Below, piece by piece: positions 5,042 to 25,808 of a stretch of 64,000 bases of DNA (position 1 is its first letter; every line of letters starts with the position of its first letter). A program made the translations under genes and the position numbers. Below the pieces are notes generated by a model, which did not search any database, was not told where the DNA came from, and saw only the letters and a list, made by a program, of their open reading frames with translations. The DNA is taken from the sequence record ON529853.1. One strand, given 5' to 3'.

Positions 5042-5185
5042 GAATCGAAACGGCGTCAGGTCAAGTCGGCCGGCGTCAAAACGAAACGGCGTCAGGTCAA
5101 GTTCGCCCGCGTCAAATCTAAATGGCGTCAAGTCAAGTTCGCCAGCGTCAAATCGAAACGGCGTCAGGTCAAGTTCGCTCGCGTC
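5042..5185. repeat. Repeat family A, left copy: four tandem 36-bp units rich in CGTCAA/CGTCAG
   Basis: Units start 5042, 5078, 5114, 5150. Confidence 0.9.
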
Positions 5186-5265
5186 AAGTTTGATCCGCCA
5201 GGACCTGAGCGAAAACGAAGACGCCCGGCGCGCATGAAAGCGGCCGGGCGTCAGGGGTCATCCGT

Positions 5266-5334
5266 TCAGAAACAGAGGCCCACAATCATGAGGGCGAAAA
5301 CGATCTTGGACGCGGAACAGAGTTTATCGAGCAT
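5266..5334 (-). CDS. 22-aa hydrophobic peptide MLDKLCSASKIVFALMIVGLCF
   Basis: AAGGAAG RBS, downstream hairpin 5221-5251, paralogue at 23063. Confidence 0.6.
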   Translation of the reverse strand: MLDKLCSASKIVFALMIVGLCF

Positions 5335-5358
5335 ATTCAGGGGCTTCCTTCTACTAAG

Positions 5359-5502
5359 GAGTCACGCCCGGTAGTAAACGTGACAGGTCGTGGGAACGCT
5401 ACAGAGAGAAATCTCGCGAGTCATCGTCTGTGTGTAACGTGACTGAACTATTTGTTAATCCGGTCGGGGGATTGGAGTCACGCCCGGTGGGAAACGTGAC
5501 TC
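5359..5502. repeat. Repeat family B, left copy: three dyads GAGTCACG-N11/12-CGTGAC(TC)
   Basis: Start 5359, 5418, 5475; the last is a perfect inverted repeat. Confidence 0.85.
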
Positions 5503-5515
5503 CGGGGTTTTGGCG

Positions 5516-6547
5516 TCAGTCGGCGCTCTGGGCGATGACCGTGGCGGCGGTCGTGCGGCTGGCGAACTGCTCGCTCGCGATGTCCCCCTTCAGCCCCTCA
5601 AAGGCCATGATGCTCGCCCTCAGGTCCGGGGCGATGTAGTCGGTCCCCTCAGCGGTCGCGTCCGCCTGAAACAGGTCCAGCAGGCGCGCCCGCACCCCGG
5701 CGGCGTCGTCCGCATAGAGGATCGGCGCCCCTTCCTGCTCGGGCTCGATCCGATACGGGCGGGGCTCGCACTCGATCTCGAACGGCCCTTGCCAGTTGCG
5801 GACCTCGACCGGCGCCAGGGCGGCGTCGGACAGTTCGTCAAAGACGCCGTTCTCACGGTCGCCGCATTCCTCGACCTCGGCCTGAGACACGAAGAACTCA
5901 TGCCGGGCGTCGTCCGCCGCGATAGCGTGGTCCATGATCCACGCCTGGCCTTGGAAGGTCGCGCGATAGGGCAGGGTTTCAGGCGCCGGCAGGGCGGACG
6001 CCGGGGGGTCGCGGTCCATCCAGAAGCGGTAGAGGGCCGCCCAGGCGCGCGCCCGCTGGCGGTCGCCGGTCGCGGGCAGATAGGCGTCGTGCAGGGCCTC
6101 GGCGGCGGCGTCCCGGTCCGGGCCGTCCGGATCGGCCTGATCCGCCTCATGGGCGTCAAAGGTCAGCAGGACGGCTTGCGTATGGCGGGCGGTCCATTCA
6201 CCGGCCGGACCCGCCGCCAGAACCTCGCGCACCTCGGGGAGGGTCAGGTGGGAAAACTGGGCAGGGTCCCCGGCGATAAATTCCGAAGGGTCCCCGGCCT
6301 TCGATTCGGCAGGGTCCCCGGTGATGAATTGGGCAGGGTCCCCGGTGATGAATTGGGCAGGGTCCCCGGTGATGAATTGGGCAGGGTCCCCGGCGATGGA
6401 TTCGGCAGGGTCCCCCCGCTCGATTCCGTCCGCGATGACGTAGAGCCGCCCGATGAGACCTTGAGCGGCCTCCGGCGTGGGGTTGTGGCGCAGCGCCAGC
6501 ACTTGGGCGGCGGCGGCGCGGATCAGGGCGGGGTAGGTGGTGCTCAT
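5516..6547 (-). CDS. hypothetical protein containing GDPAQFIT-type tandem repeats
   Basis: GGAG RBS, CtrA box 6601. Confidence 0.8.
   Translation of the reverse strand: MSTTYPALIRAAAAQVLALRHNPTPEAAQGLIGRLYVIADGIERGDPAESIAGDPAQFITGDPAQFITGDPAQFITGDPAESKAGDPSEFIAGDPAQFSHLTLPEVREVLAAGPAGEWTARHTQAVLLTFDAHEADQADPDGPDRDAAAEALHDAYLPATGDRQRARAWAALYRFWMDRDPPASALPAPETLPYRATFQGQAWIMDHAIAADDARHEFFVSQAEVEECGDRENGVFDELSDAALAPVEVRNWQGPFEIECEPRPYRIEPEQEGAPILYADDAAGVRARLLDLFQADATAEGTDYIAPDLRASIMAFEGLKGDIASEQFASRTTAATVIAQSAD
6264..6414. repeat. Repeat family C, left copy: seven GGGTCCC cores at exact 24-bp period, inside a CDS
   Basis: Cores at 6264,6288,6312,6336,6360,6384,6408. Confidence 0.95.
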
Positions 6548-6739
6548 AAAGGGCTCCTCTTGGAGGGAGATGATCAGAGGTCCTGTCTAGCGGCCAATCG
6601 TTAACATCCGGTTAACAGGCCGCATTCAGGGCCGGGCCGGGGTTCACCCGGCGTTAAGGTTAACGCCGGACGGGCGACCAGAAAGCGCCCGCCGGGGGAG
6701 ACAACCCGGCGGGCGCGGTCCTGACGGGAAGACAGTCCG

Positions 6740-7219
6740 TCAGGGGATCGGGGTCAGTTCGTCCTCGAAGGCGTCGTATTCGACGCCCGCGTCGTCTTTG
6801 ACCCGATAGGCGGGGCCGACCTCGACCGCCTCGTCCTCGTCCAGCGGGCGGATGACCTCGACCCGGTGATAGGGCGGCGTCGTGGCCTCCGGGCAGGTCG
6901 AGGCCCAGTGCAGAACGTCGCCGGGCGCGAAGGCGAAGTCGGGTTCGGGCTCGGATTCGTCGTCGCCGAACGACGGCTCCTGTTCCGTTGAGGAGTCCTC
7001 GATCTGTGTTCCAGGCCAGGACACGCCGGGATCGGCCAGAGACCGCAAACAGCCGTCAATGTTCGGGGCGGTGCGGGTGCCGATGTAGTCGCTGTAGCAG
7101 TCCGGTTCCCCGACCGGCTCGGACGGGTTGTCCCGGCGCCATTGCTGCAAGGCGGCGTCGAACAACTCGCGCGGATTGGTCACGACGACGCTGATGGATA
7201 TGGTGTAGGCGCGGCTCAT
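6740..7219 (-). CDS. hypothetical protein, possible C-terminal SH3/Tudor-like barrel
   Basis: RBS and CtrA box 7269. Confidence 0.75.
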   Translation of the reverse strand: MSRAYTISISVVVTNPRELFDAALQQWRRDNPSEPVGEPDCYSDYIGTRTAPNIDGCLRSLADPGVSWPGTQIEDSSTEQEPSFGDDESEPEPDFAFAPGDVLHWASTCPEATTPPYHRVEVIRPLDEDEAVEVGPAYRVKDDAGVEYDAFEDELTPIP

Positions 7220-7288
7220 GGGGCTCTCCCGGCTGGGGTGTTGATGACCTGACCCTACAGGTCAGGTCTTAACAAACGGTTAACAGGA

Positions 7289-8041
7289 TCAGGATTTGAC
7301 AGGGACGATCAGGTCGAACAGTTCGGCGTAGTCGTCGCCCTCGGGCGCCTTCTCCTCGGCGTTCAGCTTCTCGTCATAGGCCTTCGCCGCCGCGACGGTG
7401 CGGTCGTAGGCGTCCGCCTTGGCCTTCATGTCCGAGGCGTCCGTGCCGCCCGTCGCGGCGATCAGGGCGAGGCGCGCGGCTTCGGGCAGGGCGTCCCAGG
7501 CCTGATCATCCAGATCAAAGGCGCCCATGGCGCGGCTGGCGTCGTCGCGCTCGGCCTCGTCCAGTTCAGCCACGCGGGCTTGCAGCCGGGCGCGCTGTTC
7601 GGCGTCGGCCAGATTGGCGACGATGAAGCGCAGGTCCACCGGCTTGATCCCGTTGCCGCGCAGGAAGGCGACGACACGATCCCAGTCCGCGACCTCGGCC
7701 AAGGCGTCGCGCGGTTGCAGATCGTCCAGGCGGGCGGCGTGGTTGTCGCTGGCCTCGGACAGCATGGCGACCAGGGCCGGCGCCGTGGCGTCGTCCAGCA
7801 GGGCGGTGGGGCGGGCCAGGACCTTGCAGTGGGCTTGGTCGATGTCCCAGTCGATGGTTGAGGTCAGGGTCAGTTCCGACATGGCGGTCCAACCGTCTTG
7901 CAGGTCGGTGTCTTGCGCGAGCAGGGCGCGGGCGGCGACGACGGCCTCCTGCCCGCTCGCGGCCTCGACCGCGACGACCTTGAAGGCGTTGAGGGTGGCG
8001 TAGGCGGTGATGTGGAAGCTGTGCAGGGCGGGGCTGGACAT
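7289..8041 (-). CDS. hypothetical protein
   Basis: RBS and CtrA box 8086. Confidence 0.8.
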   Translation of the reverse strand: MSSPALHSFHITAYATLNAFKVVAVEAASGQEAVVAARALLAQDTDLQDGWTAMSELTLTSTIDWDIDQAHCKVLARPTALLDDATAPALVAMLSEASDNHAARLDDLQPRDALAEVADWDRVVAFLRGNGIKPVDLRFIVANLADAEQRARLQARVAELDEAERDDASRAMGAFDLDDQAWDALPEAARLALIAATGGTDASDMKAKADAYDRTVAAAKAYDEKLNAEEKAPEGDDYAELFDLIVPVKS

Positions 8042-8200
8042 GGTGTCTCCTGTCGTTGCGTTGAGGCTGTTCTAGCAGCCATTCCTTAACAAGAAGTTAA
8101 CGCCAGTCAATTCTTTTCAGGCGGCGGGGCGACCGCCAGGCCCGTTAACCTTAACGCGAGCGGGTCGCAGAACGCCCGGCCAAAGCCGGGCGCCTTTGAC

Positions 8201-8929
8201 CTAGACGGGTTTCAGGTCGTTGAGATCGACCGCGCCGATCTGATGCGTCTCGCGGGCGGTCTTAAGGATGGATTTCAGCAGGGTCGGGGTCGCCATGCCG
8301 CCGCGCAGAGCCTGAGCGGCGAAGTGCTCGGGGTCGGTGCCGGGGCGGGCGGCGATGATCGCGGCCAGACAGGCGGTCATCGCTTCCTTGGCCCCGCTCA
8401 CGGCGGCGGACGCGGCGGCGGTCAGGGCTCCGGCATAGGCGCCGTCCGCCTCCTCCGACATCTGCGTCAGCTTTTCGGCCTCCTCCAACAGGCGACAGGC
8501 CTCATGGGCGGTGATGGCGACGGCGGTCGGCAGTTCCGACACCGAAGCGGCGTGAACTTGCAGCAGACTGACGACCTCGTCCACATCGCTGAGGCAGACG
8601 GCGCCGTTGTCGGCCCAGTTGGACGCCAGCACCCGGAAGGCGGCTTCGGCGGCGTAGTGTTCCAGCGTCGAGCCGCTGGCGATGTCGTCGGCGTAGCGGG
8701 CCAGCGCCGTCGTCAACGGGTCGCCGCCCTGGGCCAGGGACAGGGTCAGGAAGTCAGGGCTCACCATGAACTCGGTGACGCTGCCGTCGTCGTCATCGGC
8801 GGTCAGGCCCTCGGCTTCGCGATAATGCTGGATGGCGAATTCCAGCGCGCGTTTGACATGATCGACGCTGAAGGCGCCGCCTTCGATCTGAAGGCCGACG
8901 ATGAAGTTGACGGTGGTGGGGTCTGACAT
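8201..8929 (-). CDS. hypothetical protein
   Basis: RBS and CtrA box 8974. Confidence 0.8.
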   Translation of the reverse strand: MSDPTTVNFIVGLQIEGGAFSVDHVKRALEFAIQHYREAEGLTADDDDGSVTEFMVSPDFLTLSLAQGGDPLTTALARYADDIASGSTLEHYAAEAAFRVLASNWADNGAVCLSDVDEVVSLLQVHAASVSELPTAVAITAHEACRLLEEAEKLTQMSEEADGAYAGALTAAASAAVSGAKEAMTACLAAIIAARPGTDPEHFAAQALRGGMATPTLLKSILKTARETHQIGAVDLNDLKPV

Positions 8930-9062
8930 GGTGTCTCCTGTCGTTGTGCTGATCCTGTTCTAGCACCGATTCGTTAACAACAAGTTAACGGCGCGAGGAA
9001 ACTTCGGCGTTAACCTTAACGCGCCGGGATCGCAAAGCGCCCGGCCGAAGCCGGGCGCTGCG

Positions 9063-9866
9063 TCAGGCGGGGACGCGGGAGAAGTCGGGGCTGTCGCCGT
9101 CCGCGACCGTCAGTTCGATCCACGACATACGCTCCATGTGGCGTTTGACGGACCCCTCCGACGACAGGCCGTTGAGGATATAGGACATGGCGAGAATCTT
9201 CCCCGCCTCGCTGGCGCGGGCGCTGATCTGGGTGCAGTAGGACGAATCCTCCACGAACTCCCAGACGTCGTTAATCCGGCGCTCGACGGCGACCCGCATC
9301 AGGGGCTCGTCGCCGCTGTCGGTCGGGTCATAGTCGCCCGACGCGCCTTCGCCCTCGAAGTCCAGAATCACCGCCACGTCGTCGCGTTCCAGGCGCAGCG
9401 ACGGGAAGCTGATCACGTCCGGCGCCGGGGGCGCATCCGGCAGCAGGTCGGCGGCGGCGACCGCCCAGTCTTCCAGCAGGGTCGAAGCCTCGACCATGGA
9501 CGTTCCGGCCTGACGCGCGTCGGTCAGGGCCTGAACGTGGGCGACGCCGGCTTCCAGCGCCGCTTCCAGATCGACCGGGAACGCGCGGTCGCCATCATAG
9601 TAGGGGCGGAACAGGGCCGTTGCGCGGTCCAGTTGGGCTTCCACCTTGGCGACATGATGTGAGGGGATGATGATTTCGCCGAGGCTGTCGCCCTCCATCG
9701 CCAAGGTCATATAGGGCTGCGAGCCGTCCTTGGGGAAGCTGAAACGGACGGTCAGGTCGCTGTCTCCGCTTTCGTCCGTGAGGTCCATGAACAGTTCGCA
9801 GCGGATGTCCTTGAATTCGGCGTCGTTCTCGACGTAGGCCGGCGCGGGGATTTTCTTCTCTTGCAT
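9063..9866 (-). CDS. hypothetical acidic protein
   Basis: RBS and CtrA box 9912. Confidence 0.8.
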   Translation of the reverse strand: MQEKKIPAPAYVENDAEFKDIRCELFMDLTDESGDSDLTVRFSFPKDGSQPYMTLAMEGDSLGEIIIPSHHVAKVEAQLDRATALFRPYYDGDRAFPVDLEAALEAGVAHVQALTDARQAGTSMVEASTLLEDWAVAAADLLPDAPPAPDVISFPSLRLERDDVAVILDFEGEGASGDYDPTDSGDEPLMRVAVERRINDVWEFVEDSSYCTQISARASEAGKILAMSYILNGLSSEGSVKRHMERMSWIELTVADGDSPDFSRVPA

Positions 9867-10004
9867 GACTGTCTCCTGTCGTGGCGTTGATCCTGTTCTA
9901 GCACCGATTCGTTAACAAGAGGTTAACGCCGCGCTGCGAAACGCTCGCGTTAACCTTAACGACCGGCGCCCCGAAAACGCCCCGGCTTCGGCCGGGGCGC
10001 AGGG

Positions 10005-10319
10005 TCAGCAGACGGTGTTCGCGCCGACCGTTTCGGAGACGAGGGTGGGCTCTTCGCCATCGTCGGCCTCGGCGGCGGTCGGGTCCATGTCGTCGTAGTC
10101 GGCGGCCATCCCCTCGACCCATCCTTCCAGGGCGTTGACGGCGCCGGCGAGGTCGCCGCCCGACCAGTTCTCCACCACGCCCTGCGCCAGCATCACGCCC
10201 TCGGCGGCGTCCTGATAGAGGCTCAGCAGCAGGGCCGTGGACAGGGTGACGGTCTTTTCGCCCGCCGCCATGGCGGCGTCGAGGACGGAGTCGATGGTCG
10301 GTTCAGCGGCGTCGGTCAT
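10005..10319 (-). CDS. hypothetical acidic protein
   Basis: RBS and CtrA box 10364. Confidence 0.8.
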   Translation of the reverse strand: MTDAAEPTIDSVLDAAMAAGEKTVTLSTALLLSLYQDAAEGVMLAQGVVENWSGGDLAGAVNALEGWVEGMAADYDDMDPTAAEADDGEEPTLVSETVGANTVC

Positions 10320-10374
10320 GGGTGTCTCCCGGTGGTTGATGGTGTGACCCTACAGGCCAGAGGTTAACAAACGG

Positions 10375-10794
10375 TTAACAGGTGCGAAGTTCGGCGGTCG
10401 GCGTTTCGACGCCGTCCCTGTAGGCGGTAGAGCCGAGGATGCCGAGGATCGGGTTATAGTCGCCGCGCTCTTTCTCGGCGGCGTAGAAGCGTTCGAGAAT
10501 GGCGGGCTGGGCGGCGAAGCGGTTGTTCCGCCACAGGGGCGTCAGTTTCGGCGGCAGACCGTCGAAGATGAACCAGCCGCGCTCATTCGTCGCGCCGCCC
10601 ATCCAACGCCGTTTACGGCTGATGTAGATTTCACGCTCGCCGTTGCCCGCCAGCAGCCAGACCGTTCGCCCTGGCAGGGCCAGCGACAGGTCGCGCAGGG
10701 CGTCGCGCATCATCTGTTCCGACAGGGCGACTAGGCGGATTTCCGCCGCCTCGACCGCTTCGAGGGCGACGACGAAGGGATCGCGGCGGCTCAT
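10375..10794 (-). CDS. hypothetical protein
   Basis: ATGA overlap with upstream gene; stop inside next box. Confidence 0.7.
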   Translation of the reverse strand: MSRRDPFVVALEAVEAAEIRLVALSEQMMRDALRDLSLALPGRTVWLLAGNGEREIYISRKRRWMGGATNERGWFIFDGLPPKLTPLWRNNRFAAQPAILERFYAAEKERGDYNPILGILGSTAYRDGVETPTAELRTC

Positions 10795-11396
10795 GCGGCG
10801 ACCTTGCGCGGGCGGGTCGCCAGATCGGGCACCGTATCCATGAAATCGAGATAGGCCAGAGCACGGTCGGCGTCGGACAGGAATTCGGCGTAAACCTCGG
10901 GCTTCTCGCGCGGTGAGAGGATTTCACCCGCGACCAGACGTTGACGGTGCGCAACCAGCAGCGGGCGCGCCGCGTCCAGTTCAGCGCGCAACGTCGGGGC
11001 CTCGCGCAGTCCTGCCCGCACGAAGGCGATGTCGGGTTGATAGCCGGAGCCCCAGCCCGACCAGATCACGTCCGACCGATAGTCGCTGAACGACGGCGCA
11101 GGATCGACCTCGACACAGCGGGTTCCGTCCGGCAGCTTATCGAGGGCGGCGCCGGTGAAGTGGTGAATCAACGGGCCGATCCAGTTTCCCATCATCACGC
11201 CGTCGGCGGCGGCGGTTCCCCGGCCGGTCGAGACGGACCCGGCGGGCGTGACATCGACCCAGTTGGGGGCGTCATAGAGAATCTTGATCCGCAGGGTGTT
11301 CGTGGTGTGCTGGATCAGAAAATACTCGGTCCCGTCCGGGCCGACGATCTTGTGCGTCGGCTTGGACAGCTTGGCGCTCGGGGGCAGGAAGGCCAT
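10791..11396 (-). CDS. hypothetical protein
   Basis: RBS and CtrA box 11438. Confidence 0.8.
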   Translation of the reverse strand: MAFLPPSAKLSKPTHKIVGPDGTEYFLIQHTTNTLRIKILYDAPNWVDVTPAGSVSTGRGTAAADGVMMGNWIGPLIHHFTGAALDKLPDGTRCVEVDPAPSFSDYRSDVIWSGWGSGYQPDIAFVRAGLREAPTLRAELDAARPLLVAHRQRLVAGEILSPREKPEVYAEFLSDADRALAYLDFMDTVPDLATRPRKVAA

Positions 11397-11538
11397 GAGG
11401 TGTCTCCTTTGTTCCTGATCGTTCTAGCAGGGATTCGTTAACAAGAGGTTAACGACGCGGGGGAAAACGCGCCGGGCCGGCGTTAACCTTAACGCGAGTT
11501 GGTCGCAGAAAGGCCGGGGCGAACCCCGGCCTTGCGCG

Positions 11539-12234
11539 TCACTCTTTGGCGTGGCCCGCGTCGATCTTCACCGCCAGTTCGTCCATCCGGTCGGCCTTGT
11601 GGCGCAGCCAGTCGGCGGCGCGCTCAATGACCTCGACCATCGGCAGACGGTGAACCAGACCGGACGGGAACGACCCGGACAGGTTGTCCAGCAGGGCGAC
11701 GGGCGGGACGTGGCCGCAGGCGATATAGGCCGCTGCAAGGTGGTCGGTCAGGTTCATGCCGCCGCCGGTCAGGGCGATTTCATAGTCCGGTTCGTCGTGG
11801 CGACCGTTGTCGATCTCGATCAGGGTGCAAGCCAGTCCCCAGGCGTCGAAGCGTGCGGCGATGGCGGCGATACCTTCCGAGTCGACGTATTTCAGATCGA
11901 CCGGCCAGCCGTAGTTCATCATCGGGTCGAAGCTGTCGCGCCACTCGTCGTATCCGTCCGACTGGCGGAAGGCGTCTTCGAGTTCTTCGTCGGCCAGCAC
12001 GGCGGCGCCGTCCACCTCGAACAGGGCGCGGGCCTTGGGGAAGTCCGCCCACAGGTCCGCCGCCCGCTCGTCGATCACGCCCAGCGTGACCGGGGGCAGC
12101 ACCGTTTGGAAGCCGGGTTCGCCGGTGTCGGCGTTGTAGAACTCCGACCAGTCGCGCTCCATCGAGTCGTTGGTGATCGAGACCAGCGAGAAGGTCGCGT
12201 CGGCGGCGATGGGGCGGGGGAAGGGGTTCGACAT
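11539..12234 (-). CDS. hypothetical acidic protein
   Basis: RBS and CtrA box 12290. Confidence 0.8.
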   Translation of the reverse strand: MSNPFPRPIAADATFSLVSITNDSMERDWSEFYNADTGEPGFQTVLPPVTLGVIDERAADLWADFPKARALFEVDGAAVLADEELEDAFRQSDGYDEWRDSFDPMMNYGWPVDLKYVDSEGIAAIAARFDAWGLACTLIEIDNGRHDEPDYEIALTGGGMNLTDHLAAAYIACGHVPPVALLDNLSGSFPSGLVHRLPMVEVIERAADWLRHKADRMDELAVKIDAGHAKE

Positions 12235-13122: not shown

Positions 13123-13183
13123 GACGGGTGTCTCCCGATGAATGTCGATGGGTTGACCCTAGAGGTCAGAGGTTAACAAGAGG

Positions 13184-13291
13184 TTAACCGATGGTGTAGC
13201 GGCGCCAGATTTGTTGCCCCAGCATGACGGCGAACACCGCCAGCATGACCAGCACGGTCACGACCAGGGTCCGGGGTCCGGGGCGGGCCAT
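13184..13291 (-). CDS. 35-aa single-TM peptide MARPGPRTLVVTVLVMLAVFAVMLGQQIWRRYTIG
   Basis: TGATG coupling with upstream gene; stop inside next box. Confidence 0.6.
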   Translation of the reverse strand: MARPGPRTLVVTVLVMLAVFAVMLGQQIWRRYTIG

Positions 13292-15223: not shown

Positions 15224-15225
15224 GG

Positions 15226-16340: not shown

Positions 16341-16883
16341 TTAATGGTAGGCGTCGATTTCCGACAGCGGCGGCAGGATGCGGAAGGGGATCGCCTCGCC
16401 GCCGTTCGCCTTGGCGAAGGCGTTCTCATAGGTCTTGTAGAGGCGGTCGCGGCGCCCGTCCGTGCGCAGGGTCCACTTGGTGGGGTGGCCGGGTTCCCAA
16501 TTCTGATTGTGAGCGGCCTCGACGGCGGCGATGAAGTTCGCGACGGTCATTCCGTCATGGTCCTGCCGGGTCGGGGAGATGCTGTTCAGTTCGTGCCAGG
16601 GGTGGTCGTCGGCGTAGTGGGCGCCGCCGCCGTCGCTGGACCACGAAGCCGATTCCATCCCCAGCATGACGGGCAGGAAGTCGTCGCCGTCGCCGGTCAG
16701 CAGGGAACAGACCTTGACCGCCTGCTCCATCGTCATCAGGCCGTCCAGAATGAATTCCAGATGCTCCTTATAGTTGGAAGCGTCGCGATACATATAGGAC
16801 AGGCGCGTGTTCTGTCCCGGATGGCCCGCCCAGACGGACGGGTTGATCTGGTGCGGCAGGGCGGCGGGGGTCTGGTCGGTCAT
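16341..16883 (-). CDS. hypothetical protein (YMYRDASNYK motif)
   Basis: RBS and CtrA box 16936; stop inside next box. Confidence 0.8.
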   Translation of the reverse strand: MTDQTPAALPHQINPSVWAGHPGQNTRLSYMYRDASNYKEHLEFILDGLMTMEQAVKVCSLLTGDGDDFLPVMLGMESASWSSDGGGAHYADDHPWHELNSISPTRQDHDGMTVANFIAAVEAAHNQNWEPGHPTKWTLRTDGRRDRLYKTYENAFAKANGGEAIPFRILPPLSEIDAYH

Positions 16884-16946: not shown

Positions 16947-17429
16947 TTAATCGGCGGCGGGAATTCTGAGGTCCACGCCGAAGACGTGAACCAGTTCGCC
17001 GGTCGGCTTGCGCACGATCACGCCCAGCCACTGCTCCTCGACAAAATAGCCCGTCACCTCGGCGTCGCCGATGCGATTGACGGCGACGCGCACGGTCGCG
17101 CCGACCGGGGGCGGGGAGTCCTCGCCGGACCACAGGACGGAACCGGCGAGGCCCGGCGGCAGCAGTCGGCCGTCCTTCCAGCGCGCCAGTTCATAGGCGG
17201 GGACGTGGGGGCGCCACAGGGGGGCGTAGACCTCCATCAGCCACGTCGGGCCGTAGGTGTTGCGGATCGCGCGCAGCAGTCCGCCGTCCGCTTCCTGGGT
17301 GTCGCCGCCGGTCGCCCACAGGAGGGTCAGATGCTCTTTCCAACCGCCTTCGACCTTGGCGTATTTGTCGGCGAAGTTCAGCAGGGCGGCGGACGCCTCG
17401 GGCGTCAGGGCGGGGTAGGTGTCAGGCAT
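16947..17429 (-). CDS. hypothetical protein
   Basis: RBS and CtrA box 17473; stop inside next box. Confidence 0.8.
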   Translation of the reverse strand: MPDTYPALTPEASAALLNFADKYAKVEGGWKEHLTLLWATGGDTQEADGGLLRAIRNTYGPTWLMEVYAPLWRPHVPAYELARWKDGRLLPPGLAGSVLWSGEDSPPPVGATVRVAVNRIGDAEVTGYFVEEQWLGVIVRKPTGELVHVFGVDLRIPAAD

Positions 17430-18205: not shown

Positions 18206-18763
18206 TCAGACGTTGTAGTCGCCGTATTCCGTCCCGCACTGGACGATTTCGCCGGTGGCGTCGTCCCAGTGGATGCGGTTCAGGCGCAGGATGCCGCCCC
18301 TGACGTGGGTCCATTCCACCTGACAGGTGATCATGTCGTCGAAGATCGCCTTGGGCTCGCCGTATTGCGACCAGTCGATGCCGCCGCGCTGATCGACCTC
18401 GCCCTTGGCGTCGGACAGGATGCGGGCCAGCACGTCGGGCATGAGGCGACCCGGCGCCCTCTTGGTCCCATAGGAGCCGCGCCCGCCGTTCGTCATGTTG
18501 CTGAACTTTGTGAAGTCCTGCACATAGTTCTCGACCTCGACCGACCCCGGCTGGGGCAGGTCATACATCAGGTCCGACAGAATGTCGCCGACCGGATAGG
18601 ACTCCGTGGCGGCGTCCAGCCTGTCGGCCAGTTCGGCCCCCTCGTCGCCCGGCTGGACGTAGAGTTCGGCGCCGTCGGCGCGGCGCGCCAGGACGCCGCC
18701 CATCGAATCACGCCAGGCCTTGAACCCGCCGTCGTCGCTCTCCCAGGTCGGCGCCTTGCTCAT
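18206..18763 (-). CDS. hypothetical protein
   Basis: ATGA coupling with upstream gene. Confidence 0.75.
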   Translation of the reverse strand: MSKAPTWESDDGGFKAWRDSMGGVLARRADGAELYVQPGDEGAELADRLDAATESYPVGDILSDLMYDLPQPGSVEVENYVQDFTKFSNMTNGGRGSYGTKRAPGRLMPDVLARILSDAKGEVDQRGGIDWSQYGEPKAIFDDMITCQVEWTHVRGGILRLNRIHWDDATGEIVQCGTEYGDYNV

Positions 18764-19731: not shown

Positions 19732-20260
19732 CGTCGCCGTCCTCCTCGTCCTGGGGCATATCCTCGGCGTCGGTCAGGCCGGTGACGGTCCACCAGCCGA
19801 GGCCTTGAGCGTCACCCGACGTGTAGCCTTCGCGGACCATCGTCGCCATCGCTTCCAACGCGTCGGCCACGTCCTCGTCGGTCATGGCGTCGTGACCGTT
19901 GAAGGTGAAGGTCGGCTTGACCGTCACCGGGGCGGGGGTCGATTCGCTGTTGATCTCTTCATGATGCGTCACGCTCTCGGCGACGATCTCAGCGAGGTCG
20001 TCGCCGACCAGCATCCAGTCTTCGGCGTCGCCGTCCGGGTCATAGACGACGAAGGCGCCGGGGTATTGCGCGACGCGGGCGCGCCAGCCGTTGCGCACCT
20101 CGGCGTGTTTCTCGGCGATCCAGTCGGCGCCCATATGGGTTGCGCCCTCGTAGGCTCTGACCGGGAAATTGGTCGTCATCAGTTCGCTGCGGGTGGCGAC
20201 GCGCAGGCCCCACACGTCGAGGGCGGTCTGGGCTTGCGTCAGGGTCATGGCGTCGGGCAT
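19724..20260 (-). CDS. hypothetical protein
   Basis: GGAGG RBS before MPDAMTL. Confidence 0.75.
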   Translation of the reverse strand: MPDAMTLTQAQTALDVWGLRVATRSELMTTNFPVRAYEGATHMGADWIAEKHAEVRNGWRARVAQYPGAFVVYDPDGDAEDWMLVGDDLAEIVAESVTHHEEINSESTPAPVTVKPTFTFNGHDAMTDEDVADALEAMATMVREGYTSGDAQGLGWWTVTGLTDAEDMPQDEEDGDDD

Positions 20261-20270
20261 CGGGGCCTCC

Positions 20271-20468
20271 TTAGAGATGGATCGCGGCGTCGAACGCCTG
20301 GGATTGCAGTTTCTTGGCGGCTTCGGCCTCGGCGGGGTAGAGCCGGGCCAGGCCGTCAAAGCGTTCTTTCTGATGCGAGCGCTCGCCCTCGGCGGCGGTC
20401 ATGTGCATGACCTCGCCCCACAGGTGGGCCATTTCGAGGATCAGGACAGAGCGGCGGGAAGCGTTCAT
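20271..20468 (-). CDS. hypothetical protein
   Basis: RBS and CtrA box 20510. Confidence 0.75.
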   Translation of the reverse strand: MNASRRSVLILEMAHLWGEVMHMTAAEGERSHQKERFDGLARLYPAEAEAAKKLQSQAFDAAIHL

Positions 20469-20520
20469 GGCGGTCTCCTTGTTGACCTCGCCACCCTAGC
20501 AGCGAGGTCTTAACAAGAGG

Positions 20521-20766
20521 TTAACAGCGGCGGAGCATTTCACGCATCAGGGCTTCCTCGTTGCGGGCGATGTCCAGCGCGGCGCGGTCGTGGCCTTGCT
20601 CATGCGCCTGCTTGGCCTGCTGTCGGCAGATGTCCTGGCGCTTGCGGATGTCAGCCTCCGACAGGGTGCGGAACAGGGCGTCGGCCTCCTGATCGACCTT
20701 GACGGTCCAGTGCTGCTGCGATTCGTCGTCGGCGCGGAGATGGGCGGGGAAGTAGGCGTCGGCCAT
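20521..20766 (-). CDS. hypothetical protein
   Basis: GGAGG RBS; stop inside next box. Confidence 0.75.
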   Translation of the reverse strand: MADAYFPAHLRADDESQQHWTVKVDQEADALFRTLSEADIRKRQDICRQQAKQAHEQGHDRAALDIARNEEALMREMLRRC

Positions 20767-20774
20767 GGGTCCTC

Positions 20775-21086
20775 CTAAAGGTTCTGGTCGCGGACGCGGG
20801 CGAGCGCGGTGTGGACGGCGGGGAGCAGGGTCGGCGTCTGGCCGCTCATCCAGAACTCGGTCGCGTCGCCCTCGCCCATCTGATGCGAGACGCCGTAGAA
20901 GCAGGCGCCGCGCGGGGTGTCGTCATTGGGGCATTGGACCCAGACCGGCAGGTCTTGGCCGTCGCGGGTGAGGACCAGCGCGTCATCCGTGCTGCCGTCG
21001 TCGGCGACCTCATAGCGGGCCGACAGGCCGGCAGCGGTCAGCAGGGTCATGGCGGCGGTCCAGGGGGCGCCTTGGGGAAGGGGCAT
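20775..21086 (-). CDS. hypothetical protein
   Basis: RBS and CtrA box 21128. Confidence 0.75.
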   Translation of the reverse strand: MPLPQGAPWTAAMTLLTAAGLSARYEVADDGSTDDALVLTRDGQDLPVWVQCPNDDTPRGACFYGVSHQMGEGDATEFWMSGQTPTLLPAVHTALARVRDQNL

Positions 21087-21221
21087 TGCGATCTCCTTTG
21101 TGCTGACCCTGTTCTAGCAATGATTCGTTAACAAGAGGTTAACGTCCTGCGCGGTGGTCCGGGGCGTTAACCTTAACAGGGTCAGGCCGGAAAACGCCCC
21201 GGCCGAAGCCGGGGCGCAGGG

Positions 21222-22112
21222 TCAGCCGACCCGCTCCTTCTTGAGGTGGTAGGACCGACCGTGGGTCATCAGGGAGCGGAACCCGCCCAACCGGGTCTCG
21301 CCCGGCGCCGGGGTCACGACATAGACCGGATCGAGGAAGTCGTCGTTCCAGCGGATCACGTCGTCGAACGCCTGCGGCGTGTGCAGCACGACCTTATAGG
21401 GTTCGCCTTCGGGCGCGACCAGATCGGTGGTGTGGTCCTCGTCGCCCTTGTAGCCGAACACCGACAGGACCGCGACCGGCAAGCCGTCGTCGAGCGTCGA
21501 GAGGTCTTGCAGGGCGCGGGCCTCGGCCAGCCGCTTGTGCGGCTCATAGAGGGCGCAGTCGCGCTTGAGCAGGTCAGCGCGCAAGGCGACGACACGCTGG
21601 GGCGTCAGGTCCAGAGACGCGCAGGCCCCGATGACGACGCCGTAGATGAAGCCGAGTGCGTGCTGCGTGAGCGACACCATGCCGTCCATTCCCGCCGTCG
21701 CGACCTCCTGATTTTTCAGGCCGAACGCCGCCAGGGCGCCGGCGACGTCGCGGCACTCCTGCCGGGTCGGGGCGGTCTTGGCCTCGATGTGGAGGCGCAG
21801 GGTGTCGCGGGCCTTCATCAGGTCCACAATCGCCAGCGACAGGCCGGTGTAGCGTCCATCTTCGACCGGGGCGGGCTTGGGCTTCGGGGCCGGGTAGGTC
21901 TCGACGCACAGCAGGCGGGCGCGGGTCTCCTCGACCGTATAGACCTCGACCTGATAGGCCATGCCGAGCGCCACGCGCAGTTCGTTGCGGATCGCCAGAC
22001 CGGCCTCGGGGTCGGTGGTGGTCAGGCGCAGTTCGCCGATCCGGCGGTCCTCGCCCTGGGCGGGATGGCGGCGCGACAGTTCGAGGCGCAGGTCGTAGGG
22101 GGCGTCGGTCAT
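21222..22112 (-). CDS. hypothetical protein
   Basis: RBS and CtrA box 22155. Confidence 0.8.
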   Translation of the reverse strand: MTDAPYDLRLELSRRHPAQGEDRRIGELRLTTTDPEAGLAIRNELRVALGMAYQVEVYTVEETRARLLCVETYPAPKPKPAPVEDGRYTGLSLAIVDLMKARDTLRLHIEAKTAPTRQECRDVAGALAAFGLKNQEVATAGMDGMVSLTQHALGFIYGVVIGACASLDLTPQRVVALRADLLKRDCALYEPHKRLAEARALQDLSTLDDGLPVAVLSVFGYKGDEDHTTDLVAPEGEPYKVVLHTPQAFDDVIRWNDDFLDPVYVVTPAPGETRLGGFRSLMTHGRSYHLKKERVG

Positions 22113-22165
22113 CAGGGTCTCCCGTGGTTGAGCGTCCGGTATAGCCGGAAGGTCTTAACAAACCG

Positions 22166-22537
22166 TTAACGGCGGTCTTCGCTGAGGCGGGCGAGTATTT
22201 CGTCGTTCGTCATCGTGTCCAGCAGGTCTTGCACCTGACGGGCCTTTTCGTCCTCGACCGCCTGAGCCGCCGCCTTGGCGCGGCGATGCTCGGCCAGCGC
22301 CGCCTTGCCCGCTTCGGTCGTCTCCGGGTCGATGGTCATGTAAAGGCTGACCTCGCGGCCCTGCCGATCCACGAAGGTCAGGCTTCCAGACGGACGCACC
22401 TTGACGGTGAACATCGCCTTGACCAGCCGCTCGGCGGTCTCTTGACCGAAGTCGCCGCCGAAGCTGCCGCCCGCCGCCTTGAGGGTGTTGTCGCTCTTGA
22501 GGCGGGTGTGATAGCCGATGTTCTTGTAGGTGTGCAT
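22166..22537 (-). CDS. hypothetical protein
   Basis: GGAG RBS before MHTYKN; stop inside next box. Confidence 0.75.
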   Translation of the reverse strand: MHTYKNIGYHTRLKSDNTLKAAGGSFGGDFGQETAERLVKAMFTVKVRPSGSLTFVDRQGREVSLYMTIDPETTEAGKAALAEHRRAKAAAQAVEDEKARQVQDLLDTMTNDEILARLSEDRR

Positions 22538-22547
22538 GGGGCGCTCC

Positions 22548-22886
22548 TTAGAAGGGAATGTCGTCGTCGAACGCGGGCGTCGTGACATAGGTCTGGGCGC
22601 GGCGGGCGCGGCGGGCGGCGTCCATCTCGGCGCGCTCCTCGTCCGTCGCGCTCCAATACTCGTCGTCTTCCGGGTGCGCGCCGGGCTCGCCGCGATAGTG
22701 CGGGTTCTTCACCCAAGCGTCGAACGGGTGCAGCAGCCACTCCACGTCAGGCGCCTCGAAGCCTTCCGACTGAGCGAACCCCGACAGGGCCAGGCTCATG
22801 TATTCGCCCTGGCTCAGCGACTCCATCGCCAGAGCGTCTTCCTTTTCGCGGCGGGCCTCTTCGGCCATTTCGATCACATCGCGCAT
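22548..22886 (-). CDS. hypothetical protein (NPHYRGEPGAHPE motif)
   Basis: GGAGA RBS; CtrA box 22928. Confidence 0.75.
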   Translation of the reverse strand: MRDVIEMAEEARREKEDALAMESLSQGEYMSLALSGFAQSEGFEAPDVEWLLHPFDAWVKNPHYRGEPGAHPEDDEYWSATDEERAEMDAARRARRAQTYVTTPAFDDDIPF

Positions 22887-23062
22887 CGGCGTCTCTCCTT
22901 GTGAGCCCCCTTTATGCCAGACATAAGTTAACAACAAGTTAACGCCGACGCTTTTCTGCATTTTTCTTCAGGCGGCGGCTGCGGGCGTTAACCTTAACAG
23001 CCTGTTAAGGTTAACGGGCGGGCGGGGCCTGGGAAACGGCGTCCCGTAACGGGACGCCTCTC

Positions 23063-23131
23063 CTAGAAGGTGAGCATGATGACCAGCAGGGCCAGAAAGA
23101 GGCGGGAGGCGCCGGCCAGCTTGTCGATCAA
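23063..23131 (-). CDS. 22-aa hydrophobic peptide (M)IDKLAGASRLFLALLVIMLTF
   Basis: TTGA overlap; aligns without gaps to the 5266-5334 peptide. Confidence 0.55.
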   Translation of the reverse strand: MIDKLAGASRLFLALLVIMLTF

Positions 23132-23598
23132 GACTCGCTGTCCGCTTTCATCGCCGCGCACAGGGTTTCGACCAGCCGCTTGTGACGCGCCAGAGCGGCG
23201 GGGTCGGCGCGCTCGCCTTGGAAGGGGACCAGCACCAGAGGTGTGGCCGAGGGGTCCAGCGCCCAGAAGATTTCCGTCTCGCCGTCCGTCATCTGGTAGG
23301 TATAGACGTTCAGGTCGGCGGGGGCGTGGTCGAGGAAATAGACGCGCCCGTTGAACTTGACGTCGAAGGGCTGATCCGGCGTCGCCAAGTCGATCTCGGC
23401 CAGCACGGCGTCGCGCACGGCGTCAATCGGGTGAACGCCGTCTTCGCCGATTTCATCAGGACGGGATTCGGCCTCGGCCTCCGCGTCGCGCTTGATGTCC
23501 TCGACCACGGCGGCGCGCGCCTCCTCCCAAGTCGCACAGGCGCTGGGCTCCTCGTCGGGCATGAAGCCCGAGACATTCGATCCGGTCACATAAGGCAT
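23128..23598 (-). CDS. hypothetical protein
   Basis: GGAGA RBS before MPYVTGS; CtrA box 23646. Confidence 0.75.
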   Translation of the reverse strand: MPYVTGSNVSGFMPDEEPSACATWEEARAAVVEDIKRDAEAEAESRPDEIGEDGVHPIDAVRDAVLAEIDLATPDQPFDVKFNGRVYFLDHAPADLNVYTYQMTDGETEIFWALDPSATPLVLVPFQGERADPAALARHKRLVETLCAAMKADSES

Positions 23599-23689
23599 CG
23601 GGGTCTCCTTGTTGGTTCCGATGGTGCAGACTACCCGACAAGGTCTTAACAAAAAGTTAACAGCGGCGCAATCGCTTTTCTTCGCGACG

Positions 23690-23704
23690 TTAACCTCTTG
23701 TTAA
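23690..23704 (+). promoter_or_regulatory. CtrA box in plus orientation (divergent promoter)
   Basis: TTAACCTCTTGTTAA upstream of 23751. Confidence 0.85.
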
Positions 23705-23750
23705 CTTCCGTGTGGGATAAGGGACAGGTCAACAACACAGGAGATCGCCG

Positions 23751-23996
23751 ATGGGCGAAGTCATCCCGCACCGCGTCTGGCGCAACACCCGGACCGAACG
23801 CACCGCTGGCGTGTTCGGCGCCGTGCCTTGGGTCTCGGACGCGGAGAAGTCCGACTGGGAACTGGTCACGGTCGGCTGGACCGTTCGCCACCCGGACGGC
23901 ACGACCGGGGTCGGTCGCTTCGCCTTCGAGACGAAGGACGAGGCGCAGGCTTGGGTCGATGAGAATCCCAACTTCCCCGGCATGAGCCAAGGCTAG
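23751..23996 (+). CDS. hypothetical protein, only plus-strand gene of the array
   Basis: GGAGA RBS, box 23690, hairpin at 24002-24030. Confidence 0.8.
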   Translation: MGEVIPHRVWRNTRTERTAGVFGAVPWVSDAEKSDWELVTVGWTVRHPDGTTGVGRFAFETKDEAQAWVDENPNFPGMSQG

Positions 23997-24153
23997 TCAC
24001 AAGGGCGTCGGTCGCAAGGCCGGCGCCCTTCGCCGCTGCGACCGGCTCGCGTTAACCTTAACAGGGCGTTAACCTTAACAACCCTGCCCGCTCTAGGGGT
24101 ATGACCGGGTAGGGCCAGGTATGACCGGGTCATACCGGGGCGGATTCCCGCTG

Positions 24154-24238
24154 AAAATCACCCAAATTCGCCGAATTTCGCCCAAAATCGCCGGATTTTG
24201 ACCTTAAATCACTGTTTTTACTCGATTTTTCAGGTTTT
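24154..24238. other. 10-bp-phased A/T tracts (predicted curved DNA)
   Basis: Nine consecutive tracts one helical turn apart. Confidence 0.75.
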
Positions 24239-24254
24239 CAGGCGGTTCAGCGGC

Positions 24255-24410
24255 CGTTAACCTTAACAGGGCGTTAACCTTAACGCTGGAATGGTTAACG
24301 GGGCGTTAACCTTAACGCGGGGATGGTTAACGCGGTGTTAACCTTAACGCGGGGATGGTTAACGGGCCGTTTACCTTAACGCCGGGAGGGTTAACGCCCC
24401 CAGGGTTAAT
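24255..24410. repeat. Dense tandem array of TTAA half-sites and 12-mers (~32-bp unit)
   Basis: GTTAACCTTAAC-GCGGGGATG-GTTAAC units. Confidence 0.9.
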
Positions 24411-24415
24411 CCGGG

Positions 24416-24660
24416 GCGCGTCAAATCGGGCGCGCGTCAAATTCGGCCGGCGTCAAATCGAAACGGCGTCAAGTCAGGTCGGGCGCGTTGAAGCGCGCTC
24501 GCGTCAAATCCAGATCGCGTCAAATTCGCGGGGCGTCAAATCGCGCTCCCGTCAAATCGGCCGCGCGTCAAATTCGCAGGGCGTCAAATCGGCCGCGCGT
24601 CAAATCGGCGGGGCGTCAAGTCGACCAGGCGGCGTTGAAGCGCGCCGACGTCAAGTCGGG
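24416..24660. repeat. Repeat family A, right copy: ~14 CGTCAA(A/G)T(T)C units
   Basis: Shares identical 22-mer GCGTCAAATCGAAACGGCGTCA (24450) with left copy (5145). Confidence 0.9.
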
Positions 24661-24857
24661 CTGCCAGGGCGCGCCCGAGCGGGCTTGCGCGGCGCTCCGC
24701 CTTCCAGGGAGGACGACCCGGAAGAAACGGCCTGAAACGCGCCCTGACGCGTCTTTGTAGCCCAGGCAGGGGCGCGGTCAAGCCGAGCGGGGTCGAGAAG
24801 GCCGTTTTCCGGGCCGTGGAGCGCCCTGGCGCGGGCGCGGCGGCCGCAGGGTCGCCG

Positions 24858-25306
24858 GAGTCACGAAATCCATCCACGGGCCGGAAAACCAGGCCCTGCG
24901 GGCGATCGTCAGTCACGATACCTATGAACGATGACTCTGCCTGGATTTTTGTCAGTCACGAAACCCGGAGGCGGGCTTCGCCGGCGATCCTGGCGCCCAG
25001 GCGGATCAGTGTCAGCGGTTGTGTCAATGCGGGACACAATAAGGCGGGATTAGGGCGAAATGGGATTTCAGGGCGGAGTCACGTTCCCCGGAATCGGGGC
25101 TCGGGGCTTCTGTTGATTTCATTGAGGTTTTTCTGGAAATCGCCGCGAAACGGAGTCACGAAGTCCGTTGTGCAGTGCAGCATTGCGGGCGTTTCGGCCG
25201 GGTCCAGACGGGGCGAAACGGAGTCACGTTTTCCTAAGCCGTTGGGATCATTACGCTTTTCCGACAGGGTCAGCACCTGAGTCACGTTTGACACGAACGA
25301 TGACTC
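24858..25306. repeat. Repeat family B, right copy: (G)AGTCACG half-sites and dyads
   Basis: 24858, 24911(+24929), 24954, 25076, 25153, 25221, 25279(+25298). Confidence 0.85.
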
Positions 25307-25322
25307 CGGCATCAGAGGCCCG

Positions 25323-25408
25323 AAAACAGGCAAAATCACTGTAAAATCAGGTATTTAGGGGTGTTTTTCGGGGATTTTAGGCGAATTCAGCGCCGTTTTC
25401 GGTGAAAA
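25323..25408. other. Second phased A/T-tract segment
   Basis: Tracts near 25323,25332,25343,25353,25364,25374,25384,25396,25405. Confidence 0.7.
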
Positions 25409-25569
25409 CGGGCCACAGACTCGCTGGGAAGGTCTTGCCGCCCCGCTGAACGCCCGGCACGCTGCCGATGACGCCGCTTCCGCTCCCAGGGCGAGGGGCG
25501 GATGATCTGGACCGCCCAGAAGAGCAGCAGAAGGAAGACCAGGCCGCCCATCACGATCGCTATCGCCAT
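25387..25569 (-). CDS. 60-aa membrane-anchored basic peptide (MAIAIVMGGLVFLLLLFWAV...)
   Basis: GGAGAG RBS; TM helix plus Arg-rich tail. Confidence 0.5.
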   Translation of the reverse strand: MAIAIVMGGLVFLLLLFWAVQIIRPSPWERKRRHRQRAGRSAGRQDLPSESVARFHRKRR

Positions 25570-25602
25570 TTCGCGCTCTCCAGCCCCCTGGGAAAACACC
25601 CA

Positions 25603-25808
25603 GGGTCCCTGACGGAAAAATTCGGATGGGTCCCCGGTCAGGAATTCGCCAGGGTCCCTGGACGAAGAATTCCGAAGGGTCCCCGGCGGGAAAATTCGCC
25701 AGGGTCCCTCGACCAGAAAATCCCGATGGGTCCCCGCCCGGATTATCGCCAGGGTCCCTGGGCGAAGAATTCCGAAGGGTCCCCGGCCCGAAAATCCGGA
25801 AGGGTCCC
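25603..25808. repeat. Repeat family C, right copy: nine GGGTCCC cores at 24-26 bp period
   Basis: Cores at 25603,25628,25652,25677,25702,25728,25752,25777,25802. Confidence 0.95.

Follow-up and report, generated by a model that had tools for sequence, protein, structure and literature searches.

Two sets of repeat arrays near the terminase genes of Brevundimonas phage vB_BpoS-Bambus: boundaries or interior of a predicted long terminal repeat?

Introduction

Brevundimonas phage vB_BpoS-Bambus (hereafter Bambus; sequence record ON529853.1) is a jumbo phage of the Dolichocephalovirinae, the phiCbK-like prolate siphophages, whose genome of 348,100 bp (G + C content 66%) has been deposited as circular. 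The DNA studied here (the window) has a length of 64,000 bp and is identical to positions 1–64000 of this record. It contains two sets of short repeats, each composed of an array of GCGTCAA words (family A), dyads with the core AGTCA-N16-TGACT (family B), and an array of GGGTCCC words, which read GGGACCC on the opposite strand (family C). The question raised by this arrangement is whether the two sets mark the ends of a direct terminal repeat (DTR) or belong to its interior. The original prediction had favored the former by interpreting them as a compound signal for terminase cutting and repeat duplication at both ends of a repeat of approximately 19.4 kb. In the accessible text of the published description of Bambus, only genome size and mean coverage are given, the words “PhageTerm” and “repeat” are absent, and no analysis of the termini was found (Friedrich et al., 2023; PMC10070969). 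The comparisons reported below make it, on balance, probable that a non-coding control module is present twice inside a DTR of approximately 39–40 kb, each set being one copy of this module rather than a boundary of the repeat.

Results

Two sets of arrays and their conservation

Motif families were read from the sequence and with Tandem Repeats Finder (TRF), and motif clusters were scanned piecewise over the complete 348,100-bp genome. All three families were recovered where they had been reported (Table 1), and their order and orientation are indeed identical in both sets. The A arrays share an identical 22-mer (gcgtcaaatcgaaacggcgtca, at 5145 and 24450), and the two occurrences of TGGGAAAAC in the window are each situated immediately ahead of a C array. 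The left set spans 5.04–6.41 kb and the right set 24.26–25.94 kb. The latter lies directly downstream of terL, the end of its C array being 360 bp away from the terL stop at 26169, as the original prediction had also noted. In the direction of terL, the right set has the order D'-C-small membrane gene-B-A-D, where D and D' are elements rich in GTTAAC, and this D'-C-B-A-D order starts within ~400 bp of the terL stop. The left set shows the same C-B-A order but is located 19.8 kb from terL.

Since the total numbers of the motifs just modestly exceed the expectation from dinucleotide shuffling, the non-random signal lies in their clustering. Over the whole genome, clusters of at least three GCGTCAA words within 120 bp exist at 5073–5181 and 24418–24613 only, clusters of AGTCACG/GAGTCA at 5359–5497 and 24859–25301 only, and every one of the four AGTCA-N16-TGACT dyads falls inside the two sets. 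The two loci also hold all eight window matches of GAGTCACG (within 5359–5502 and 24858–25286), 16 of the 27 GCGTCAA matches, and 16 of the 25 GGGTCCC matches. C arrays (GGGGACCCT) are found next to both A/B clusters. The presumed confinement to two loci holds for the A and B clusters but not for family C, which forms a third array outside the window, at 340974–341078. This third array consists of five GGGGACCCTGCC units in an intergenic gap and is flanked by GTTAAC promoter-like elements; neither A nor B arrays were found near it. Its counterpart in phage Gurke comprises two units (282,054–282,078).

The two-set layout is kept in Brevundimonas phages Kabachok and Gurke, the terL gene of the latter having 78% nucleotide identity to that of Bambus. 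In Gurke, the right set is located at 313.3–314.6 kb and the left set at 292.4–293.7 kb, 20.8 kb apart. Among the phages examined, a second (left) set was seen only in this Brevundimonas jumbo clade (Bambus, Kabachok, and Gurke).

Location of the module relative to the repeat ends of related phages

According to the accessible parts of Gill et al. (2012; PMC3556154), the termini of phiCbK were mapped by tag ligation and read coverage and enclose a repeat of 10,287 bp, whose left end lies in terL codon 652 and whose right end is intergenic, whereas the repeat of Colossus has a length of ~16.7 kb and an abrupt left end in non-coding DNA just past terL. The GenBank annotations indicate a repeat of 18.4 kb starting 36 bp past terL for CcrPW, and one of 23.9 kb for CcrSC, the first bases of which match the phiCbK left end inside terL base for base. 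Overall, the left ends are thus found either at terL codon 652 (phiCbK and CcrSC) or 36–95 bp past terL (CcrPW and Colossus).

In all four phages a C-B-A module lies wholly inside the repeat and starts 350–1950 bp past the left end. The 1.9-kb non-coding stretch beyond the left end of Colossus harbors GTTAAC words (~100–170), a GGGACCC array (355–494), GAGTCAC/GTGACTC words (650–900), a TTGACGC array (1375–1510), and a GTTAAC array (1550–1790), and the order of the module in CcrPW is the same. CcrSC carries C at 1944–2037, A at 2872–3030, and D at 3070–3300, and phiCbK, which has no B elements, carries C at 853–974, A at 1793–1831, and D at 1926–2093. BLAST searches with the right C array retrieved arrays throughout the subfamily, always within the annotated repeat. 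Because the homologous module is wholly contained in the repeat of relatives with mapped or annotated ends, the right set of Bambus appears to be a subfamily-wide module inside the repeat, just past its left end, rather than a boundary. The boundary formerly proposed at 24.9–25.3 kb would also be situated 870–1270 bp beyond the terL stop, at odds with the ends of the relatives in codon 652 or at most ~100 bp past terL.

The right ends of the repeats in phiCbK, Colossus, CcrPW, and CcrSC are free of any A/B/C set. They are located 44–45 bp past the first G of a GGGACCC core in phiCbK (10243 to 10287), CcrSC (23902 to 23946), and both copies in CcrPW (18359 to 18404 and 308096 to 308140), and a C core is also present at the annotated left end of the CcrPW repeat, so that the proposed association of family C with repeat ends is borne out for these relatives. 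In the three phages the core reads GGGACCC(A)AAGGCC. It is part of a longer element, tgtttcaaaaYgggac-N4-aGGGACCCaaggcc-N17-attttYc.ccggggcgcc, which aligns closely among Colossus, CcrPW, and Bambus and has a more diverged equivalent in Gurke at 277,260. Apart from this element, the repeats of the different subclusters have little sequence in common, those of the phiCbK group and those of CcrPW and CcrSC having been reported, in the part of the study available, to share 8–12% identity (Mascolo et al., 2022; PMC9437464).

In Bambus the right-end element (GGGACCCAAGGCC ... attttcgccggggcgcc) is present in one copy at 334,950–334,994, outside the window. Its segment GGGACCCAAGG occurs once in 348 kb (334,994–334,984, in terL orientation), with flanks that align to Colossus and CcrPW, and the element is found in the syntenic place, 1.5 kb before the portal gene. 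The region of the left set (5.0–6.5 kb) contains no such element. Based on the single syntenic copy and the 44-bp offset known from the homologous phages, the right end of the Bambus repeat is predicted at ~334,950 and not at the left set, which had been proposed for this role. For the left end, homology suggests an interval with three candidate positions (Table 1). The TerL protein of Bambus has kept the phiCbK-like motif LGDVLWDYYD at residue 652 (nt 26,939–26,945), the counterpart of the phiCbK cut site, yet overall it is equally far from TerL proteins of the Colossus and phiCbK types (68% for Colossus and 65% for Magneto).

Several observations on related records touch on these ends. The Kabachok record (ON529852.1, junction 356,285/1) opens at a point that corresponds to 25,797/25,798 and falls 12 nt inside the terL-proximal C unit; this break may either reflect the physical left end or have arisen accidentally during assembly. 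The annotated repeat of CcrPW starts exactly at a lone GGGGACCCTTCGAAATT unit. In the Colossus record (JX100810.1), the right end is fuzzy (16,589–16,764) and precedes the conserved element (17,194–17,239) by ~475–650 bp; as the element coincides with the annotated end in CcrPW, the sister of Colossus, the right end of Colossus may merit re-examination. A scan of IMG/VR for CAGGGACCCAAGGCC in contigs ending at +44 returned known Caulobacter phages and apparent chance matches, and one Logan contig (SRR19221875) encodes a repeat gene and carries no depth information.

A CtrA-box domain extending across the left set

In Bambus, 73 of the 74 genomic CtrA boxes (TTAA-N7-TTAA) and 142 of the 156 GTTAAC sites fall into the 39.3 kb that separate 334,950 from the stop codon of terL (334,950..26,168), the domain extending from 335,373 through the record origin to ~25,931–25,936. 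CtrA boxes reach a density of 1.67/kb between terL and the left set and of 2.04/kb beyond the left set, compared to 0.003/kb (one site) in the other 309 kb. The left set is not the edge of the domain, which crosses it at equal density. Gurke possesses the same zone (278.3–313.1 kb), which likewise crosses its left set, and in phiCbK, CcrSC, and Colossus the CtrA-box/GTTAAC sites end at the right end of the repeat within the flanks examined. A concentration of CtrA-binding sites (TTAA-N7-TTAA) in the terminal repeats of phiCbK-like phages is also described in the accessible text of Mascolo et al. (2022; PMC9437464). Moreover, repeat genes of Colossus are colinear on both sides of the Bambus left set, with gp010 and gp014 corresponding to 16.3–11.5 kb and gp027 to 338..348,001.

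Many GTTAAC and CtrA sites belong to a recurring GTTAACCTCTTGTTAAC-type block immediately upstream of minus-strand gene starts, and owing to this placement the block looks like the promoter type of the 39.3-kb domain. Short GTTAAC tandem repeats of the D family were also observed at 3,029–3,069 and 13,168–13,188 (CGTTAACCTTAACAACC x2.4 and AGAGGTTAACA x1.9).

Family C as a DNA word

The left C array is embedded in the gene BAMBUS_00100, where it is translated as GDPAQFIT-type repeats of eight amino acids (codons 45–100), the 24-bp period being in frame. The full-length protein has identities of 89% to its Kabachok and 52% to its Gurke homologue and no match in Pfam or PHROGs. In the GDP units of the three phages, glycine is encoded by GGG in 19 of 19 cases (usage 12%) and proline by CCT in 18 of 19 (usage 4.4%). 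The translation of the right C array shows nothing periodic. The consensus gGGGACCCTgc..AaTt applies to coding and non-coding arrays alike (57 units from six phages). The near invariance of such rare codons, together with the same word in non-coding arrays of 24–26-bp period, indicates at the sequence level that C is under selection as a DNA word. The left array is a clear example of a DNA signal overlaid on coding sequence.

As to the reader of this word, a packaging protein, and most simply TerS, would be the most economical candidate, because the array has a fixed place after terS-terL and an invariable orientation and because its core recurs close to mapped ends. While the right array and its equivalents in the relatives occupy comparable positions close to terL and to the left end, respectively, the left and third arrays are far from the predicted ends, and C alone can therefore not specify cutting.

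Families B and A and associated small genes

Every B word includes a GANTC motif. The B dyads have the geometry of operators for dimeric regulators, and those of the left set are located ahead of an unannotated gene for a tiny membrane peptide (Table 1), which is followed by a GC-rich hairpin with a T-run (~5219–5251). Colossus contains a counterpart of this left B module in the middle of its repeat (11840–12112), with three dyads, a hydrophobic open reading frame (ORF) of 24 codons (gp022), and an annotated terminator. B-like palindromes of 27 bp with one additional spacer base (AGTCACG-N13-CGTGACT, N17 core) were observed at genome positions 196,291; 235,740; 278,079; 282,022; and 313,882. 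Some form full hairpins, and they lie near intergenic gaps beside integrase, DNA polymerase, tail-tube, PhoH-like, and major capsid genes, that is, late and replication genes. This location of the N17 palindromes points to a putative role of B-type elements in transcriptional or RNA-level control rather than in packaging.

In terL direction, the left A array is a run of TTGACGC words, and this word equals the -35 consensus of Caulobacter sigma-73. The right A array (13 repeats at a spacing of 16 bp) is accompanied at a distance of 100–650 bp by two AT-rich windows of 100 bp (24200–24299 with 44% and 25300–25399 with 46% G + C), whereas the lowest comparable window in the left module has 51%. 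Scans for sigma-70 promoters and terminators over both modules yielded background levels, the sole strong terminator being a 12-bp all-GC hairpin at 6716–6685. This terminator (6,685–6,716, minus strand) lies upstream of the BAMBUS_00100 promoter region and coincides with a weak, sub-threshold Rfam ar14 match (E = 0.07). A structured RNA as explanation of the arrays was rejected, as an Rfam E-value scan of 1–30 kb gave sub-threshold matches only, none of them in the arrays.

Features of the region

The terL and terS genes and all elements within the window are compiled in Table 1. From 23.6 kb down to 0.4 kb, every gene is small, encoded on the minus strand, and of unknown function. Outside this region, a tandem repeat with a 76-bp unit (x2.6) unrelated to families A–D was observed at 33,078–33,276, in a non-coding gap of low G + C content (32,740–33,458; 58%).

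Table 1. Repeat arrays, genes, and predicted repeat ends in the Bambus window (limits of the repeat predicted by homology).
Feature	Coordinates	Strand	Description
A-left	5037..5187		TRF 36-bp unit x4.2: GCGTCAAATCGAAACG + GCGTCAGGTCAAGTTCGCCA; one of the two GCGTCAA clusters in the genome
Hydrophobic ORF	5266..5334	-	22 codons (MLDKLCSASKIVFALMIVGLCF), unannotated; between B-left and A-left; kept in Kabachok
B-left	5359..5502		Three GAGTCACG-N12-CGTGACTC dyads (core AGTCA-N16-TGACT); holds two of the four genomic N16 dyads
BAMBUS_00100	5516..6547	-	343 aa, conserved, no known family
C-left	6260..6415		Seven units GGGGACCCTGCC.AATTC, 24-bp period, inside coding sequence; GGGTCCC words at 6264-6414
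D array	24263..24409		GTTAAC-rich 32-bp unit x4.2, including TTAA-N7-TTAA (CtrA-box) spacings
A-right	24408..24660		~13 GCGTCAA words, mainly 16-bp period; TRF 16/48-bp units at 24408-24623, more copies to 24660
B-right	24858..25306		Seven (G/C)AGTCACG words in a single orientation; complete AGTCA-N16-TGACT dyads at 24911 and 25280
60-aa membrane-protein gene	25387..25569	-	Unannotated in Bambus; directly after C-right; Kabachok homologue annotated (KABACHOK_05880)
C-right	25600..25810		Nine units alternating GGGGACCCTTCGGAATTC / AGGGACCCTGGCGAATT, 24-26 bp, super-period 49-50 bp; non-coding; GGGTCCC words at 25603-25808
D'	25853..25936		Five GTTAAC words in the gap separating C-right from terL; the GTTAAC sites of the 39-kb GTTAAC/CtrA-box zone end here
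Predicted left-end interval	25798..26945		By homology
Left-end candidate 1	25809-25798		First C unit, CcrPW type
Left-end candidate 2	~26074-26133		36-95 bp beyond the end of terL, as in CcrPW and Colossus
Left-end candidate 3	26939-26945		terL codon 652, phiCbK/CcrSC type
terL	26169..28892	-	907 aa, annotated terminase large subunit
terS (BAMBUS_00460)	29133..29825	-	Small terminase; PHROG 11494, E = 6e-64

Discussion

Predicted extent of the terminal repeat and proposed roles of its elements

The terS-terL layout and the repeats of the relatives agree with the original prediction in placing the two sets in the terminal-repeat neighborhood of a phiCbK-like phage. The part of that prediction in which they form both ends of a ~19.4-kb repeat is disfavored by the same relatives. 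The favored DTR would extend from 25.8–26.9 kb through both sets and position 1 to ~334,950, a reading that has, in our judgment, slightly better than even prospects. Where the elements lie, that they are unique and conserved, and that they are constrained as DNA was observed directly, whereas the limits of the repeat and the binding partners are what we infer.

A number of points weigh against this placement. The ends in Bambus are predicted by homology, and the position of the left end varies among the relatives. A DTR of 39–40 kb would exceed every annotated repeat of the subfamily (10.3, 16.7, 18.4, and 23.9 kb), and the right end of Colossus has been reported as fuzzy and short of the conserved element. 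Two of the C arrays (6.3 and 341 kb) are remote from all predicted ends, and the protein partners of all arrays are putative. A two-point regression on head length (values of Gill et al., 2012, applied to the heads of Friedrich et al., 2023) furthermore predicts a redundancy of ~18 kb, whereas a simple ratio of kb per nm head length yields ~25–38 kb. Head length was rejected as an arbiter between 19 and 39 kb, as the scalings disagree and the electron-microscopy values are noisy and inconsistent between isolates.

If the sets are internal modules, the C arrays could be bound at the DNA level by a protein involved in packaging, most simply TerS. They would be situated on that side of the left cut which is packaged, and the lone C-like core could set the right cut 44 bp away. 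The B dyads may act as operators for a dimeric regulator that controls the gene of the tiny membrane peptide, the A arrays as iteron-like protein-binding repeats and possibly as an origin or a loading site for RNA polymerase or an initiator, and the D arrays as CtrA-box promoter elements. A bolder version, to which we attribute only a small chance of being correct, regards GGGGACCCT as the recognition word of an unusual terminase system that handles an exceptionally long (~39–40 kb), non-permuted repeat. One C array would then load the terminase at the left end and the lone C-like core would set the right cut, while the inner module and the third array might serve as checkpoints, synapsis sites, or T5-like transfer pauses for so long a repeat, the word being imposed even upon a protein-coding gene.

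Alternative explanations

According to the original prediction, the sets would flank a repeat of ~19.4–19.8 kb, with the terminase reading a compound signal at both boundaries and cutting in or near B, at 5.2–5.5 and 24.9–25.3 kb. That the genome has only two loci combining A, B, and C, in the same order and orientation, is in line with this model, as are the 19–21 kb spacing kept in Gurke, which falls into the 10–24 kb range of the relatives' repeats, and the one head-length regression that gives ~18 kb. We nevertheless regard it as unlikely: the right-hand module is enclosed by the repeat in four of four annotated relatives, none of which has a second module at the other end, and the conserved right-end element of Bambus is away from the left set. 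Beyond the left set, the CtrA-box domain continues for 19.6 kb at equal density and a homologue of a Colossus repeat gene is found, and the counterpart of the left B module is located mid-repeat in Colossus. Alternatively, the modules might be replication origins, two per repeat copy, with the A arrays as iterons for a phage initiator, AT-rich DNA for unwinding, and a Cori-like cell-cycle control by the CtrA boxes and the B words with their GANTC motif, and family C would then be unrelated to packaging. The 13 direct repeats of the right A array, its two AT-rich windows (44–46% G + C against 66% in the genome), the flanking CtrA-box arrays, the GANTC in every B word, and a DNA primase gene in the same domain (337,060–337,971) would fit an origin. 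This explanation seems improbable to us, since the left module is without a comparable AT-rich window, an initiator gene was recognized beside neither module, and cumulative GC skew over the genome tracks gene orientation without any sign of an origin. In Pfam and PHROG scans, the proteins encoded around both sets had no replication match and indeed no function except TerS, and it would be left unexplained why the C core is associated with mapped ends.

The stop signal of phage T5 consists of non-coding DNA rich in repeats, where the T5 repeat has its inner end. By analogy, the right end of Bambus could enter the cell first, and the module, at the inner edge of the entering repeat copy, could pause DNA transfer. 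The CtrA-controlled repeat genes would then be expressed first, and the Brevundimonas clade would have two such stops. The module is situated at the repeat edge opposite to the transcription direction of the repeat genes, and the accessible text of Gill et al. (PMC3556154) compares this lineage of siphophages with long DTRs to T5 and SPO1 and mentions an A1 protein homologue, of the T5 kind, among the products of phiCbK-like phages. That homologue is encoded in the replication module, outside the repeat, and we consider such a pre-early region very unlikely. Scarcely credible, finally, is the idea that the entire repeat, module and genes alike, was once duplicated in tandem and that the left set is a decaying and now functionless remnant of this event. 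It would account for the distance from terL to the portal gene, which is 40.9 kb in Bambus and ~20–22 kb in Colossus and CcrPW, and for the fact that the left set halves the 39.3-kb domain into 19.75 and 19.57 kb. The corresponding halves in Gurke are unequal (21.2 and 16.5 kb), though, the left set has been kept between Bambus and Gurke, and the rare-codon C array inside a conserved gene indicates ongoing selection on it. Comparison of the 19.6–19.8 kb halves by tblastx and blastn, moreover, revealed no gene paralogy but only short shared promoter-like intergenic blocks, and a tandem duplication of the repeat was for this reason rejected as the source of both sets.

Comparison with known systems

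The predicted repeat of Bambus shares with the DTRs of other phiCbK-like phages the subfamily, the gene order terS-terL-repeat-portal, a C array that directly follows terL, the conserved GGGACCCAAGGCC element of the right end, and the CtrA-box-rich block of small genes on one strand. It differs in that its ends are predicted and that, with ~39–40 kb, it would surpass all other repeats of the group in length. A second A/B/C module in mid-repeat and a third C array further distinguish Bambus, Kabachok, and Gurke from the mapped relatives. The right C array resembles the R sites of lambda cosB, pacL/pacR of SPP1, and the pac hexamers of P1 in that several direct repeats, in a fixed orientation relative to packaging, neighbor the terminase genes and lie on that side of the predicted initiating cut which is packaged. 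Unlike these, the C arrays are 350–1950 bp rather than tens of bp away from the cut in the relatives, comprise 5–9 units of 24–25 bp, and have additional copies far from any end; their binding by TerS is putative. Phage T7, which the original prediction had named for comparison, carries arrays of short repeats beside its 160-bp terminal repeat and thus shares with Bambus the association of short tandem repeats with a non-permuted terminal repeat. The Bambus relatives, however, have their arrays at one end only and within the repeat instead of flanking both boundaries, their repeat exceeds that of T7 in length more than 100-fold, and the unit sequences are unrelated. The first-step-transfer stop of T5 is comparable in layout only, as a stretch of non-coding DNA rich in repeats and dyads at one edge of a long siphophage terminal repeat. 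In the CtrA-rich DTRs and gap regions of Alphaproteobacteria phages, as far as covered by the accessible text of Mascolo et al. (2022; PMC9437464), TTAA-N7-TTAA sites are likewise nearly confined to the repeat domain and mostly intergenic. These correspond to the D-type sites of Bambus, and arrays of the A, B, and C types are not mentioned in that text.

Long repeats and CtrA sites are thus already known from this subfamily. Neither that text nor the accessible parts of Gill et al. (2012; PMC3556154), where the phiCbK terminase is proposed as a class of its own, mention the composite module of C, B, and A, a conserved element 44 bp ahead of the right end, or the presence of two module copies in Brevundimonas jumbo phages.

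Conclusions

We know of no earlier description of the module, of the offset of the right-end element, or of the module duplication. For the question of how long non-permuted repeats of the T5, SPO1, and phiCbK types are made and measured, the present analysis offers testable elements. In three genera, a conserved element keeps a constant distance of 44 bp to the right end, an array found throughout the subfamily follows closely upon the left end, and one clade carries the whole control module twice. If the placement favored here is true, the “circular” records of Brevundimonas jumbo phages hide a repeat of ~39 kb, the largest in the group. The packaged genome of Bambus would then have a size of ~387 kb, and the dosage of ~70 early genes would be changed.

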